Below, one piece after another: positions 1 to 64,000 of a stretch of 64,000 nucleotides of DNA; within the stretch, counting starts at the first letter, position 1; each line of letters starts with the position of its first letter. Made by a program: the position numbers and the translations under genes. Source of the stretch: Utricularia gibba (taxonomy: Eukaryota > Plantae > Magnoliophyta); contig CM007989.1 of NCBI GenBank assembly GCA_002189035.1, positions 1,550,001 to 1,614,000 of the forward strand. Reading direction: 5' to 3'. A model generated the notes under the pieces. The model made no database searches, was not told where the DNA came from, and saw nothing but the letters and a program-made list of their open reading frames with translations.

Positions 1-1147
1 AAGGAGAAGATGGACTCCAAAGATGGCTCTGGGTGGTGGAAGTTTTGCACTATCTCCATGACTTGAGTGGCTCCATGACTACTGAAGCTCTGTTCCACGT
101 TCCCTTCACCGACGAAATGCGACTGAATTTGAAGTATCTCAGAGACATCACCATCCTCGCTAGCAACGAATCGAAGCCATTCAGCTTTCCAGGATCGCAG
201 TTCTTGCCATCTAAAACAAAGACGAAGGCGAAGCAGATGGAGAAGCATGTCAGAGAATCGTTCATGAAGATCATCAATCAACGGATTAAAGATAGGAAAG
301 CGAACAGCAACACGGAAGAAGTAGAAGAAGACTTGCTTGATCTTTTCCTTGATGAATTGTATCATGAACCCGGGAAGAAGCTGAGCGCCAGAGAAGAGAA
401 GAGGATCCTGGAGGAAGCCATGGCTCAGTGCAAAGTTTTTAGTTTTGCGGGTTTGGACACCACATCGACACTGGTGGTATGGACGATGATCAGTCTCGCT
501 ATTCATCAGGACTGGCAGGCTCGTGCTAGAGAAGAGGTCATCAGTGTCGTCGGAGATCAGAAGAATTTAACCAGCGATATTCTCGGACGGCTAAAAATCG
601 TAACTTTAACCAACTTTTCTCCTCTGTGTATGCTGGCCCAATGCTTTGGAAGGTGGCTTACTTGTCTGAGTCTGTTTGGCAGGTGACAATGGTTTTGAAT
701 GAAGTGCTCCGCCTTTATCCGGCGACGATGGAGCTTTCGCGGGTGGCGGAGGAGGATTTCCAGCTGGGGAGCCTCCTAATTCCAAAGGGCGTCTTGGTAC
801 AGATTCCGATCGCCCTTCTCCACCGGCGAACTGACATCTGGGGCAGCGACGCAAATGAGTTCCGGCCGGAGAGGTTCGCGGACGGCGTGATGAAAGCGAC
901 CAACGGATATGGGGCGGCGGCTTTCATGCCGTTCAGCTTTGGCCCCAGGGTCTGCATCGGCCAGAACTTCGCACTTCTGGAAGCGAAAGTGTTCGTAGCG
1001 CAGCTGCTGCGGACCTTCACCTTCGAGCTCGGCCCGGCTACAAGCACGCGCCTTGCGCCGACTTCATGGTCCACCCCAGCACGGTGCGCCGCTGCTGCTC
1101 CGAAGGATCTCGACTTGATCCCATCTTGCTTCTCAATTCAAATCTAG
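1..1147 (+). CDS. CYP72A: Cytochrome P450, CYP72A-like; 5'-truncated by the window edge; intron 600-682; two apparent 1-bp deletions near the C-terminus
   Basis: I-helix AGLDTTS, DWQARAREEV, ExxR (EVLR), PERF and heme motif FSFGPRVCIG. GT-AG intron 600-682. Adding one base at ~1037 and one at ~1075 restores the typical tail YKHAPCADFMVHPQHGAPLLLRRIST*. Confidence 0.9.
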
Positions 1148-58279: not shown

Positions 58280-59154
58280 TCAAGTGCTAGTGATTCCACT
58301 TTCAGGCTCCTGTAGTAATCCTTGGAGCCTATTAGCCAAACTCTTCTTCGCCGCCGGGGAGACGCCATTTTTTCCGATGATTGACTCAAGCACAGCTTCT
58401 GAAAGCTGCTTGTTTTCAATAACCGCAGCTGCGGTTTCAGGAATCGACCCATCTTTAGAGAAGCTAATCTGCGGATTCAATAAATGAATCAAATCCAGAG
58501 AACTCATCATTGAAGAATGAGGGGAGCAGGGAGCTTCTTACAGTCAAAGAACCAGTGGGTGATTGAGTGAAGAGAATCGAGGATCCCGGTGGGAAGTTCT
58601 CGTTCTTAAAAGCTTCTAGAAACTTTTCCGTGGCTTCGGCCTCGGACTCGGTAAATTTTCCGATGGATTTCCAGTAAGCGGTGCAGTTCTCCACCACTTT
58701 CTCCGAGTACTGCTGGCCCGTCAACGGCAGGATCGTCGTCACATTGATGAATTTTTCGAATGGACCTACAATAATTTTCCAAATCCAGGGTTCAGAATAC
58801 CGAACGAATTGACATTGAGGGTCAATTGTCGTCACCTGTGACGATATCGAAATAGAAATCAACGGAATCCACCAATTCCGCCGCAGTCTTGCCCCTCCAC
58901 TTGGCGGCAAGAGCGCCGACAGCGGTAACCTCCAAATAGACGCCGATAGCCGTGAACTTGATGAATTTCCCCTGGATATCCAGTCCCCTGACGCCTGCCG
59001 CCAAGTATACAGATCAGAAACTAATCCACACCCCCAAAAGAGCTGTGCATACAATACCTGCGCCGCCGAGGATGAATGCACTGGTGGATCCAGGAGCCTT
59101 CACCGTAGACGGAAACACGACGGTTTCAATTTCGATCGGTGGCGGCGGACACAT
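58280..59154 (-). CDS. CHI: Chalcone isomerase type I, 4 exons
   Basis: [24 protein letters not shown] and LESIIG (Ser-Ile, type I). ACCTAAC MYB element upstream (~59243-59249, minus strand) and ACACGTGT at ~59533. Confidence 0.93.
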
Positions 59155-59685
59155 CTCGACGGCGAGTTCGGCTATGCTTGCAGATGTGAAGCGAAGGCAG
59201 AACTTGGAATAGATATAGCAACGAGGGAGGAATAGTTGAGCGTTAGGTGGAAGGAAGAGACTCTTGACCGCCACGAGTTTGTTCACAACTGCTCTGCTCT
59301 GTCTTCTGGTCGAAGCATCTTTACCAACCAAATTACAGAAATGCTGACATGGCATTTTCGGAAATTGAGTTATTTGTATTCATTTCCGGGATGAGGTATG
59401 GGGTGGGGAACGTGGGCGGTGGGTGTCACGAGGAAGCAGTTGTGGGGGCAAACGCCGGGGTGGAAGGTGGCGGGGAAAGTGGGCAAACATGCACCCACTC
59501 AAGTCGTCACCATGTACAAGGACTGCAAGTGAACACGTGTCAAATTTTGATTCAGTCAAAATTGTTTTTAAATAATTAAAAATAGTTTTGCGAGGCCAGA
59601 CAAGAAATATACGACAGGAAGTGGAAGGGGTTCGGAATTAGGGCGGGAACCTTGTCGATTTGAGTTTCTTGACAATCCTGGAGAA

Positions 59686-60336
59686 ATGTGGAGGAGAAGC
59701 AACCTTGTAATGGCATCGTCATTGTCGTTAGTTCTGCGATTCGTCTGCTGATACTTAATGGTTCTTTTGACTAAAGAAATTATTCTACGGTTCTAGGTTG
59801 GAAGTAGAGCAGCGCATGATCATGATTCTGGTCAGAGCATTTCAGGTTATCTTATGTTTTTTCTGCTTGAGAAGGTGGTGTTTTAGTTTCGATAAGGGCT
59901 GATAGTTCATTTGTTACTTTAGTTTGGATCGAAGTTTGGTTAATTTGCATCGAGCTAATTATGCGAGTTTAAAGTTCGTGCTTCAATGTATTTTCTTTGA
60001 TTGGGTGATAGAGGAGGAAGAAGGCTTAGAAGTTGGAGCGGATGGAGTTGTGCTTCCTTCAGATGGGGCTCAAAGGAGAAAGGTGTGCTCCTGCTGGATT
60101 TCAACTTTGGCGCATCCTGTATTATAAATTTTCTTTTTTTTTTTAAAGAAATCTCTTTGACGTTTTCTTGATAGTGTGATGTTTGATCTTCTCTTGCTTT
60201 ACCCCTATCTTTAAATTCTTAATATGCTAGGTGGAGATGCAAGTACTCTCTCAACTTGACATACTCAGAGGTTCTGTGAAGATTTTTTTTTTTAAATTGT
60301 CACTTCTTGAATATGATCCCAAGTTCAGCTGCGGAG

Positions 60337-60404
<68 letters not shown>

Positions 60405-62832
60405 TGAAAACGCTGGTGTGGGGGGTTTGCAGATTCCTACCTGGAAAATTGCTCTGAGAACTTCACCTCGTCTCACATGGTATTGCCCTTCACCTTTAAT
60501 GAAGCTGCTATGTTAATGCCTTTTAGATGACAAGATGTAATGCACTGAAAATAAGGTTATTATGTGCTTAAGAATTCCACGTGATAACACTCCACTTTCT
60601 TCTTTAGATTTTATTTTATTCTTGCCAATGAAATATCTTGAAGCTCTTCTATAAGCAATTTTCTGCTAAATGCTTTCCAGTTATGGTTTCTGGCAGGACA
60701 GGGAAGGATGCTCTTATGATGATATCGAAATTCCTATGTTTGATGATAGGAATAGCTCGAGAGATATTCCTGGAACTTCCAATTCCATCAAAACCTTTTC
60801 CAATAGAGAGGAAGTTTTCTTACCAACAGTGTGTTCAGTTTCCCATTTGGATGAACTTTTGCCTGCTAACGAGTAATGTAGTAGATTAGCTGTAATATTT
60901 TTTGCAGACCCAAGTTGGTTGAATATGTCACAGTTCCTTGACACTTTATTCTCTGTCGTATTAGGTATGACCCGAAAATCAAAACTAGTAACCTTCCAAG
61001 TTCAAGGAAGATAGATCTCACATGGTCAGCAGCCAGTCGGGAAGTGCAGTCATTAGTTCAGCTGAATGAAGTGTCTAAATATTTTTCTGTAATGGAAAAA
61101 CAATCTTATCAAGGTATTGAAAATCACTGCAAAAATGAAATGGGGATGCAATCTGCATGTGTGATTTTTGTTTCTCTTCATTGCTTATCCTTAAACATTT
61201 TCAAATTGTATTCCTATTTGGAAGATATATCCACTTGAAAACATATTGTTCTTGAATGCTTAGTTGCCAATTGAAATATATCTTAGCATACTACACAATG
61301 CTGCAGATGGAGAAGTTGTGGGAACATCAAAATTCAGTAACCATGCCATTAAGAAAGGCCCATCTTTATGTAACACTGACAGCCTAAGAAAATTATCTAA
61401 GATTACTCCAGAGCAAGATGACATTGTAGATGATCTTGATGAAGATGAGGAAAAGTTTTTTGATAGTTCTGATACAATGTTCCATCCAAAAGATATCCAT
61501 CAGCCAGAAGACTCCAGAGAATCACCAGAACCGCGTCACATGCATCATCCTAGTGAACACTCAATGTCTGACTATCTGGACTGTTTCAGAAAGGGGAAGT
61601 CTGGAATAGCAGGGTTGTTCTCTGCTGCCTTCTTAGCTTCAGTTTGTGACTGTATTAGTGTTATCGCTGGAATGGTAACCATAATAGAGGATTATCTGAA
61701 GTATTTCCATTGACTGGTAGGGATCTGGATGATGACGAGCTGGAGGATGCATTAGAGAGTGGATCATCTTCTCCTGTTGATCATGAGGCAAGTAATTGGC
61801 GGGGTATCTCCAAATTCAACAATGATTTTGTTTATGTGCTTATTCACTGACTGATCTCGCTGCTTCAGGATAAGCCGCATGACCTGAATGTAACTATACC
61901 TCTAAGGACCATGAGCGACAAATTTCATGAAGCTTTTGGAACAATGGCTGGTGGCAGTGAGAGATCATGCAGGTGGATGAAGAAATTGTTCCCATTTTGA
62001 AATCGTAAAAGTAGCCATTATCTTTGGTTACTTATTTTAATGTGGAACTTGCAAATCTTACCACAGCGGTATCCATGGACGGCTGCAGCAAGTAATCCAG
62101 AATGAAAAGGATAGGGATATGGAGTTCTTAAAATATGTAGGGACAGAAACCGGTATTAAAGGTAAAATCTGGCTTGTATTCTGTGTTGTATTTTCTAACC
62201 CTGTTAAGAAACTTTCACTTTTTTTCCAGATAAAGAAACAGGCCTTCTAGTAAGAATCATATCCAAGTCTCTGGAAGCAAAGCTAACAGTTTGCTGTTGC
62301 ACTTACTGTGGTGATGAAAATGTATGCCCATGACAAAACTCTCTCTCACACACTTCAGCAGCCACGATTTTTATTTTATGGTTCCTTGTGACGCTTAATG
62401 AAAGGATGTTGCTTGGTTTGTCTCTGCAGGAACATTATACTGAGTACAGAAACTCCCAAGGTAAAACAAAAGATGCACAATCAAGGGCATTGTGCGTCAT
62501 CTTCAACACAAGATTATGCAACAATGTCGAGCTTGATGTAGGAAACTTGATCCGCATACACCATCCCTGGTATGACCAGTTTGATAAACGCAACATAAGC
62601 TGCCCGTTTAGCCAGAAATACATAAACACCCCTGTTCCCTTGTTACTTTCTCTTTAAATGCATTCCACTTAGATGCTTATTCTTTCGAACTCTGATTGCT
62701 TGCCAAGCCTAGCGCTAAACATCTCTCACATCTAAGCACCATTCTGTGACATGCAACAGGAAGGAGGTGCACCCCAAGGCCAAAGGCGAAGTTGTGTATC
62801 TGTGCTCCTACTTTTCACAGGTACACACATAG
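59686..62832 (+). CDS. Multi-exon uncharacterised protein with an acidic N-terminal half and a predicted OB-fold C-terminus (SPIDR/DUF4502-like, see findings); 5' exons tentative
   Basis: Phase-consistent 3' exons: TMSDKFHEAF, SGIHGRLQQVIQNEK (62067-62161), LLVRIISKSLEAKLTVCCCT (62230-62322), LCVIFNTRLC..NLIRIHHPW (62430-62569) and KEV..VVYLCSYFSQVHT* (62760-62832). Confidence 0.75.
60338..60399. repeat. Intronic (CT)n microsatellite, ~30 units
   Basis: Direct reading. Confidence 0.97.
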
Positions 62833-63092
62833 TTGAGAATTTTCAAGGGTGAAAGCTTCATTTCATGGCTGATCGATCTCCTGTTGTCGCTGAGAATACA
62901 CCTATGTGGCCTTCAAATATCTATATATCTTCCATGTTTCAAATATATACCATTAAAGATCTATGATTGAATTCAGGTACGTTATAAATGTTAGAGCATC
63001 ATCTTGTTTAGATGCATCTGTCAGATAGGATTAGATTTGAATGTCCATAAATCATATCATCAAGGAAAATTTATGCCTGGATTATATTATTA

Positions 63093-63297
63093 GAGCATCT
63101 TTATTGATTTTCGAAAATGCTGACATGTATTTTCGTAAATGTTGACATGGTTTTCCGGAAATCAATTTTATTTTTATGGAAATCACTTTTATTTTGTGTT
63201 ATATAATGTGGAAATCATTTTGAGGAAACTCAGTTTCCCTATGGAAACTCAATAACGAAAGCGACGTCATCGTTTACGGAAACGAGTAAAGATGCTC
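63093..63297. mobile_element. Tourist-like MITE (PIF/Harbinger), 205 bp
   Basis: Perfect 11-bp terminal inverted repeat GAGCATCTTTA ... TAAAGATGCTC, flanked on both sides by TTA (63090-63092 and 63298-63300). No coding capacity. Confidence 0.8.
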
Positions 63298-63910
63298 TTA
63301 AGCATTCGTTTGATTCGTGTGGGAGGTGTATTAGTTTCAGTTTTAAATAGAAGTTCATTTGGTTAGCATTAGATACTTAATTAAAATTACTAATACTATC
63401 TCTGATATTTAATTTTGAATTAATTCTATTTTCACGAATATTTCTGTGCTGAGCTTTTTCATTAAATCTGAGTATTTAGTAAAAATATAAAAAATGTGAT
63501 TTAAAAAATATCATATGTAAAATTATCTGAATTTTGATTTAAAATCTGAGTAAATATATAGTGAAAATCTTATTTATTAAATCCGAATATATGAATTTGA
63601 TATCGTGGTTAATATTTGGTTTTAGATGGGGTGTAGGTTGGGTTAATGGAGTGGTTTGCGTGGCAGGCAAGGCGACCGACACTGGTTTTTGCAGTTGGGC
63701 TACGGGGAGGCGGATATTTAGGCTCCTTCCAAGGGTAAAATAGTCTTTTGGGATTATACGTATCTATTCGACGGTTGTATGTATATCCACGCTTCCGCAC
63801 GGCGCACACCCACCATTCCAAGCGATTCGATTCGATCCGATCCGAACCGAAGGCTGAACTCCTCTCCCGGATCGATGCTTCAGCCCTACCTCGATCAGCA
63901 GCGTCCGGAG

Positions 63911-64000
63911 ATGCAGCCGTCGTACGACGACGACGAAGCCGTGAATCACGGTGACAATCTTGTTTCCCCTGCGAACGTTAACATCGATTCCGTCGCTGGA
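63911..64000 (+). CDS. Probable first exon of a gene running off the window; product unknown
   Basis: ATG after a GC-richer leader, open to the window end (MQPSYDDDEAVNHGDNLVSPANVNIDSVAG). Confidence 0.4.
   Translation, partial: MQPSYDDDEAVNHGDNLVSPANVNIDSVAG

Follow-up and report, generated by a model that had tools for sequence, protein, structure and literature searches.

The stretch of DNA analysed here, called the window below, comprises 64,000 nucleotides of the Utricularia gibba genome (assembly GCA_002189035.1, contig CM007989.1, positions 1,550,001 to 1,614,000 of the forward strand; all positions given are those of the window). It carries, on the + strand from 59602 to about 63015, a gene of 14 exons whose product, a long acidic N-terminal region followed by a predicted oligonucleotide/oligosaccharide-binding (OB) fold, is probably a remote, truncated relative of the animal protein SPIDR. 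The gene structure was derived from public RNA contigs of four runs of the same organism (X1, X2, X3 and X5), which were placed on positions 59400-63300 and define 13 splice joints; the junctions of exons 10-14 are each present in contigs of three to four runs. The longest open reading frame of the spliced mRNA begins with an ATG at 59686, ends with a TAG at 62830-62832 and counts 476 codons, and the 3' untranslated region reaches to at least 63015, with one RNA contig extending to 63072. An initial annotation, made from the letters alone, had quoted five peptides from the last exons as parts of a candidate plant SPIDR. All five are indeed encoded on the + strand at 61869-62832 across the joined exons 10-14, and two of them (SGIHGRL... 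and ...HHPWKEV) cross splice junctions, so that only the spliced product contains them.

The gene is expressed and belongs to a conserved plant family. An exhaustive all-protein HMMER search, seeded with exon 13 (46 residues), led to a 515-residue Andrographis protein (P0002) with the match near its C-terminus; a 2303-residue protein matched by the same exon (P0004) was discarded as a repetitive false positive. A search with P0002 gave 39 matches and one of 5.8 billion proteins with a profile of 19 orthologue sequences gave 139, and a later profile search brought in further members from Asteraceae and Apiaceae. All matches listed are eudicots: they come from Lamiales, Solanales, Gentianales, Ericales, Cornales, Apiales, Asterales, Vitis and Tetracentron, and from Malpighiales, Fagales, Malvales, Sapindales, Brassicales, Fabales, Rosales and Cucurbitales. 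The gene looks single-copy and is found in every eudicot lineage among these matches. Family members are usually 430-590 residues long, and the listed members carry no precomputed Pfam domain except in obvious gene-model fusions. BLASTP matches the window protein over its full length to Paulownia and Buddleja orthologues (best E value 6e-101, 40% identity); its residues 322-475 match a hidden Markov model (HMM) of the 162 C-terminal columns of the family with an E value of 1e-59, and of the 32 columns with a conservation of at least 90% it retains 26. The end-to-end alignment of the 476-residue product, together with the C-terminal HMM match, rules out chance as the origin of the gene and its peptides. 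The Arabidopsis orthologue may be AT1G02960, a candidate suggested in part by the 'kinetochore protein' naming; no paper on this locus was found.

The predicted protein has a simple order of domains, an acidic region (residues 1-320), then two helices and then a five-strand OB barrel, with the chain ending about 20 residues past this single fold. Residues 1-320 are rich in acidic residues and serine (isoelectric point 4.6, 21% D+E, 14% S), and the 156 residues that follow are close to neutral. A disordered N-terminal region was thus found adjoining a globular domain of the central type; for a full-length orthologue in the ESM Atlas, the model has a predicted local distance difference test (pLDDT) score of 0.46. 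The acidic disordered arm holds about eight conserved short motifs. The N-terminus of the family reads MWRR...DSDQSISEEEE, and further motifs of the disordered region are QVLSQLExLR, DDEVExPxF, TWSxASxExEAL and EHSMAExLDxF as well as an acidic SSDDEEN stretch; the acidic EEIISDDE stretch and the KAKPKFxF motif of the family have both diverged in the window protein. Directly before the domain lies RTMADQFxEAxG, of which D, F and A each have a conservation of 90% or more across 57 family members, and which in the window protein provides the DxFxxA element DKFHEAFG (residues 326-333). In the family, the pre-barrel helix is marked by GKLQQVMQxEKERD and the barrel by VRILSRSLEAKLxVCxC, TIIFNxRxCxDVELEVGNLIxIHPPWKEV and, at the extreme C-terminus, IILCxYFSQ.

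To describe the C-terminal domain, two AlphaFold2 models of its 162 residues were calculated from a 57-sequence alignment, headed by the Buddleja sequence in one case and by the Ipomoea sequence in the other (mean pLDDT 69 and 73, predicted template modelling score 0.57 and 0.60). In each model, a short helix (4-15) and a long helix (28-57 and 34-58, respectively, in orthologue numbering) precede five strands. VIA-align set model residues 67-162 on PriB, HIN, Teb1, SSB and Stn1 with Z scores of 7-8.5, and Foldseek returned the OB folds of NTR, Teb1, RPA and MCM10 with E values of 1.7e-4 and weaker; an MCM N-terminal domain and an NTR/C345C domain were further matches among solved structures, and the identity across the matches was 4-17%. 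Judged by these models, the C-terminal domain is a single OB fold, a five-strand closed barrel that can be superposed on solved OB folds. Both the long acidic, low-complexity N-terminus and the one OB fold behind it had been proposed in the initial annotation, and both are borne out. The generic OB folds that bind single-stranded DNA (ssDNA), such as PriB/SSB, RPA, Teb1, Stn1 and HIN, have the five-strand barrel in common with the plant domain but lack the pre-barrel helices of the plant family and its motifs LEAKLxVCxC, IIFNxRxCxDVELEVGN and HPPWKEV. The PDB searches named no specific relative among solved structures, and no SPIDR structure is detectable there; the full-length profile of 19 orthologues, searched against PDB sequences, gave neither SPIDR nor any other match.

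A more specific relationship is suggested by SPIDR (KIAA0146), which in animals consists of PF14950 (DUF4502) and PF14951 (DUF4503) and, like the plant protein, has a long disordered N-terminus followed by a helix-plus-OB central domain. PF14950 was the commonest Pfam match of the plant family, in 9 of 57 non-redundant C-terminal domains and 2 of 10 further full-length members, with E values from 0.0028 to 0.1 and a best score of 17.6 bits. The two further full-length matches are both from Cuscuta (E 0.01), and an Ipomoea full-length protein also matches. The matches, though weak, are co-linear and confined to the last ~80-110 positions of DUF4502, and their register is fixed: every alignment shown sets plant domain residues ~55-141 on PF14950 positions ~297-375 of 376, and one is longer (33-141 on 268-375), reaching into the long pre-barrel helix. 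By this alignment, the plant helix and the barrel up to the HPPW motif would correspond to the end of DUF4502, while the last two strands would lie past its boundary. As DUF4502 had been specified beforehand by the initial annotation, the best match has a per-family P of about 1e-7 (0.0028/24,736). Single exons of the window (23-46 residues, too short) gave nothing useful against Pfam and PDB sequences, and no match to PF14950.

In agreement with the profile matches, the predicted structures also point to SPIDR. For residues 360-517 of P0008, the ESM Atlas model matched three plant clusters best and after them a chordate 'DNA repair-scaffolding protein' cluster, 100% of whose members carry PF14950 and PF14951, with a template modelling (TM) score of 0.68 over 143 residues; an arthropod DUF4502 cluster reached 0.57. 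The first AlphaFold2 model gave a TM score of 0.61 with SPIDR (145 of 162 residues, spanning 3-162) and of 0.58 with the arthropod DUF4502 cluster, which equals the scores with the Atlas models of the plant family itself (0.58-0.62), the next families, including NTR-type OB domains, scoring 0.51 or less. With the second model, made for the other orthologue, the values were 0.60 for SPIDR, 0.59 for the arthropod DUF4502 cluster and at most 0.48 for the next family. The structural matches to SPIDR take in the pre-barrel helices, whereas most matches to generic OB folds cover the barrel only. Hence, in comparisons with predicted models on both sides, both AlphaFold2 models and the Atlas model find their best structural neighbours outside plants in the SPIDR clusters (TM 0.57-0.68). 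Language-model features of the Buddleja, Ipomoea and Arabis orthologues ranked the arthropod DUF4502 cluster first among named clusters (0.82-0.83), followed by HROB clusters (0.80) and chordate SPIDR (0.70-0.71). Sequence profiles, predicted structures and language-model features, three lines that are only partly independent and none of which is decisive, are thus suggestive of SPIDR as the nearest named family.

Several observations weigh against this relationship. None of the 67 scanned members reaches the PF14950 gathering score of 27 bits, PF14951 is unmatched in these members, the N-terminal 300 positions of DUF4502 are unmatched as well, and the N-terminal motifs of the plant family have no detectable similarity to SPIDR. 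Unrelated families score equally well in one or two members (PP2C, E 0.002; HRI1, E 0.005; CLIP, E 0.007), and Mu_Gam/TOTE (PF22709, Mu Gam/Sipho_Gp157-like) recurs in a fixed register in 5 of 57 members, down to E 0.01. Exon 13 of the window (62430-62567) also matches PF22709, with an E value of 0.028 over ~30 residues in the NxRxCxDVELEVGN strand region; this match sets a helical phage domain on a beta-strand region and was taken as chance and as a gauge of the noise. The recurring Mu_Gam/TOTE match indicates that relatives have chance similarities in common, and the PF14950 matches are not independent either, since they cluster in Convolvulaceae, Solanaceae and Gentianales. Because the noise matches are similar and the PF14950 matches clustered, recurrence and a fixed register are by themselves not enough to establish homology. 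The profile of the plant family, searched against 5.8 billion proteins at E <= 10, returned eudicot members only and no SPIDR, which is weak evidence, since this search needs shared five-residue words. On the structural side, a TM score of ~0.6 does not prove homology when the OB domain is small and the models compared are predictions, and by the calibration of the tool feature scores below 0.9 are leads only, with the HROB clusters at 0.80. The Pfam and structure evidence, moreover, was obtained from orthologues that are 35-40% identical to the window protein; it was carried over to the window protein because local HMM and BLAST results tie them together. The kinship with SPIDR put forward in the initial annotation therefore stands as the best-supported family assignment, by the fixed DUF4502 register and the structural neighbours, and falls short of formal significance (E 0.0028; 17.6 vs 27 bits).

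The main alternative is an OB-fold protein of the plant lineage that would probably act on DNA or chromatin and would have a generic disordered-plus-OB design, with no specific ancestry in SPIDR. Such a protein would account for SPIDR-directed sequence matches that are all sub-threshold and on par with noise, for PDB searches that give only generic ssDNA-binding OB folds (Z <= 8.5) and for a profile search that found no non-plant homologue; the bimodular design of a disordered region and OB folds is, furthermore, common to SHLD2, HROB, SPATA22 and SPIDR (PMC11377751). We nevertheless regard this explanation as less likely than kinship with SPIDR, as three different methods single out SPIDR among thousands of families, and the SPIDR models fit as well as the family's own Atlas models, pre-barrel helices included, whereas other OB folds remain at 0.51 or below.

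It is improbable that the protein is instead a divergent plant member of the HROB family (C17orf53/MCM8IP, PF15072), which would recruit or activate the MCM8-MCM9 helicase. HROB acts in homologous recombination and, like the plant protein, has a disordered N-terminus and a single OB fold; language-model features place the PF15072 clusters second among named families (0.80, 25 of 100 matches), and HROB homologues exist in plants (PMC6771392). However, PF15072 was matched by 0 of the 67 scanned members at E <= 10, whereas PF14950 recurs, and no HROB cluster is found among the structural neighbours of either AlphaFold2 model. Plants, moreover, are reported to have recognisable HROB homologues of their own; as ordinary searches sufficed to find these (PMC6771392), HROB and the gene described here would be two distinct genes. 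A better match to another OB-fold family, the outcome that the initial annotation had named as speaking against SPIDR, was thus not observed: PF15072 gave no match, and the other OB folds were structurally poorer.

A kinetochore (Spc25-like) or LPA1-like protein, as suggested by stray automatic labels ('kinetochore protein', 'Kinetochore Spc25', 'LOW PSII ACCUMULATION 1') on family members otherwise named 'uncharacterized protein', is hardly credible and effectively refuted at the sequence level, as family members have no Spc25, other kinetochore or DUF3493/TPR Pfam match, and the LPA1-named cluster proteins (TPR + DUF3493) that were checked have no BLASTP similarity to the family at E <= 10, which makes the LPA1 label a clustering or annotation artefact. 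The 90%-identity cluster of a Brassica member (P0118 / P0132-P0145) also holds LPA1 proteins with TPR and DUF3493 and a glutathione-transferase fragment; this mixture is presumably a clustering artefact that arose via fused neighbouring gene models and propagates wrong names. Among Lamiales, P0065, P0041, P0042, P0036, P0020 and P0017 join the family sequence with ATG18a, an AAA ATPase, a PMD domain or NF-YB, and they look like merged adjacent gene models, not true fusions.

If the plant protein is a remote relative of SPIDR, the domain structure of the human protein indicates which part has been retained. SPIDR is characterised by its binding of SWS1-SWSAP1, RAD51, BLM and FIGNL1 and by its promotion of RAD51 foci. 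According to Schou et al. 2024 (PMC11377751), human SPIDR (915 residues) is disordered at the N-terminus and has three RPA1-like OB folds with ssDNA-binding activity at the C-terminus, the C-terminal OB-fold fragment being 623-915; a fourth globular domain, the central one, was inferred to be an OB fold as well, with detection only at E 0.015. PF14950 spans at least residues 64-294 (PMC12738175), and residues 1-515 bind SWS1-SWSAP1 and RAD51 (Martino et al. 2019, PMC6821187), as the initial annotation had said of SPIDR as a scaffold; the region matched by the plant family lies within or beside this fragment. At 476 residues, the plant protein has half the length of SPIDR, short as the initial annotation had inferred, and it is without DUF4503, that is, without the three RPA1-like OB folds and the zinc ribbon through which SPIDR binds ssDNA and chromatin (PMC11377751). 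Since SPIDR 1-515 binds the partners, PF14951 is unmatched and the chain ends ~20 residues after the barrel, the plant protein would, by analogy, correspond to the disordered region and central domain of SPIDR and therefore to its partner-binding half.

In plants, the SWS1 homologue is SSN2, as the initial annotation had stated, a SWIM-domain protein of homologous recombination that was described in Arabidopsis in complex with RAD51D (PMC3974866). Counteraction of FIGL1 has been proposed for the mammalian SWS1-SWSAP1-SPIDR complex (PMC11327267). By analogy with SPIDR 1-515, the plant protein might act as a nuclear adaptor of DNA repair or recombination, with the arm and the helix-plus-OB central domain retained and the DUF4503 OB folds missing, and could bridge RAD51 and SSN2 with its partner RAD51D. 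Such bridging would stabilise RAD51/DMC1 filaments, possibly against FIGL1. A function of the plant protein in a Shu complex is, on this analogy, a tentative proposal. It is likewise conceivable, with similar reservation, that a plant 'minimal SPIDR' of disordered arm and central OB fold represents the ancient partner-binding core of the Shu scaffold, which together with SSN2 (SWS1) and RAD51D would stabilise RAD51/DMC1 filaments versus FIGL1; in that case, either animal SPIDR acquired its RPA-like DNA-binding tail of three OB folds later, or plants lost it.

Two elements of the sequence would be of interest for such a role. FxxA is the RAD51-binding motif of BRC repeats, and by its resemblance to these repeats the DxFxxA before the domain is a candidate RAD51-binding motif of the FxxA type. 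The OB fold may serve as a protein-docking or weak ssDNA-binding module; as the RPA-like OB folds are missing, strong ssDNA binding would not be expected, unless it came from the single OB fold.

SSN2 and RAD51D act together in plant homologous recombination and in immune gene control, and the gene described here is a concrete, testable candidate for their partner, with relevance to the control of meiotic crossovers and to gene targeting in crops. The central domain of human SPIDR is poorly understood and lies near truncating variants found in ovarian insufficiency. If the kinship is true, the plant protein would show which part of SPIDR is ancient, and the central domain with its inferred OB fold would be the core that has been conserved. 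Should the homology not hold, the sequences still form an unannotated and widely conserved plant family of OB-fold proteins, which merits a Pfam entry and a correction of names. A search of about 8.4 million papers and preprints found none on a plant SPIDR, in line with the initial annotation's remark that none has been characterised, nor on the plant OB family or on plant Shu-complex components beyond SSN2.

The positions of the exons and conserved elements are given in Table 1.

Table 1. Exons and conserved elements of the SPIDR-like gene (positions in the window)
Feature	Position	Strand	Content	Basis or remark
Exon 1	starts ~59602, ends 59706	+	coding part 59686-59706, MWRRSNL	longest open reading frame; orthologues begin MWRR
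Exons 2-5	59797-59845, 60012-60082, 60231-60270, 60433-60479	+	conserved N-terminal motifs inside	contig joints
DSxQSISEEEE motif	59824-60025, spliced	+	in exons 2-5	conservation
QVLSQLxxLR motif	60237-60269	+	in exons 2-5	conservation
Exon 6	60697-60872, alternative acceptor 60681	+		RNA contigs
Exon 7	60965-61113	+		RNA contigs
DDxExPxF and TWSxASxE motifs	exons 6-7	+		conservation
Exons 8, 9	61307-61613, 61721-61787	+	acidic disordered region	RNA contigs
EHSMxxxLDxF motif	61555-61587	+		conservation
Acidic stretch	61722-61775	+	in exon 9	
Exon 10	61869-61972	+	C-terminal module begins here	RNA contigs
DxFxxA motif	61905-61940	+	RTMSDKFHEAFG	near-invariant; short helix predicted in both AlphaFold2 models
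Exon 11	62067-62161	+	long pre-barrel helix, GIHGRLQQVIQNEKDRD...	
Exons 12-14	62230-62321, 62430-62569, 62760-62832 (coding)	+	OB barrel, LLVRIISKSLEAKLTVCCC ... LCVIFN ... GNLIRIHHPWKEV ... VVYLCSYFSQ	stop TAG 62830-62832

All introns are of the GT..AG type with the sole exception of 61788-61868, which, once a 3-base ambiguity of its joint has been settled, is a GC..AG intron (donor GAG|GCAAGT) and is backed by contigs of all four runs. At this intron, run X5 has a variant joint from 61787 to 61870 (one extra T), and this run differs from the window by 11 single bases, which suggests another accession or allele. The RNA contigs also contain two kinds of alternative form. The intron between 60479 and 60697 is spliced to two acceptors 16 nucleotides apart (60681 and 60697), and the 92-nucleotide intron 6 (60873-60964) is kept in some contigs; use of the acceptor at 60681 and retention of intron 6 each disrupt the reading frame, and the resulting forms are likely to be unproductive isoforms or targets of nonsense-mediated decay. 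Intron 4 contains a perfect (CT)n microsatellite of ~30 units at 60340-60400. The introns of the gene are very short (68-217 nucleotides) and the adjoining gene is very close, which, together with an identity of only 35-40% to the nearest orthologues (Lamiales), suggests a compact, fast-evolving asterid genome.

This adjoining gene, at 58464-59355 on the - strand, encodes a chalcone-flavanone isomerase (PF02431, E 2e-22 for the exon at 58822-59004) and is oriented head to head with the SPIDR-like one. As only ~300-450 bp separate its first coding exon from the start of the SPIDR-like transcript, the two genes probably have a short bidirectional promoter region in common. On the other side, a further gene apparently begins on the + strand at 63876-64000, with an ATG at ~63876 and a frame that is open past the end of the window.

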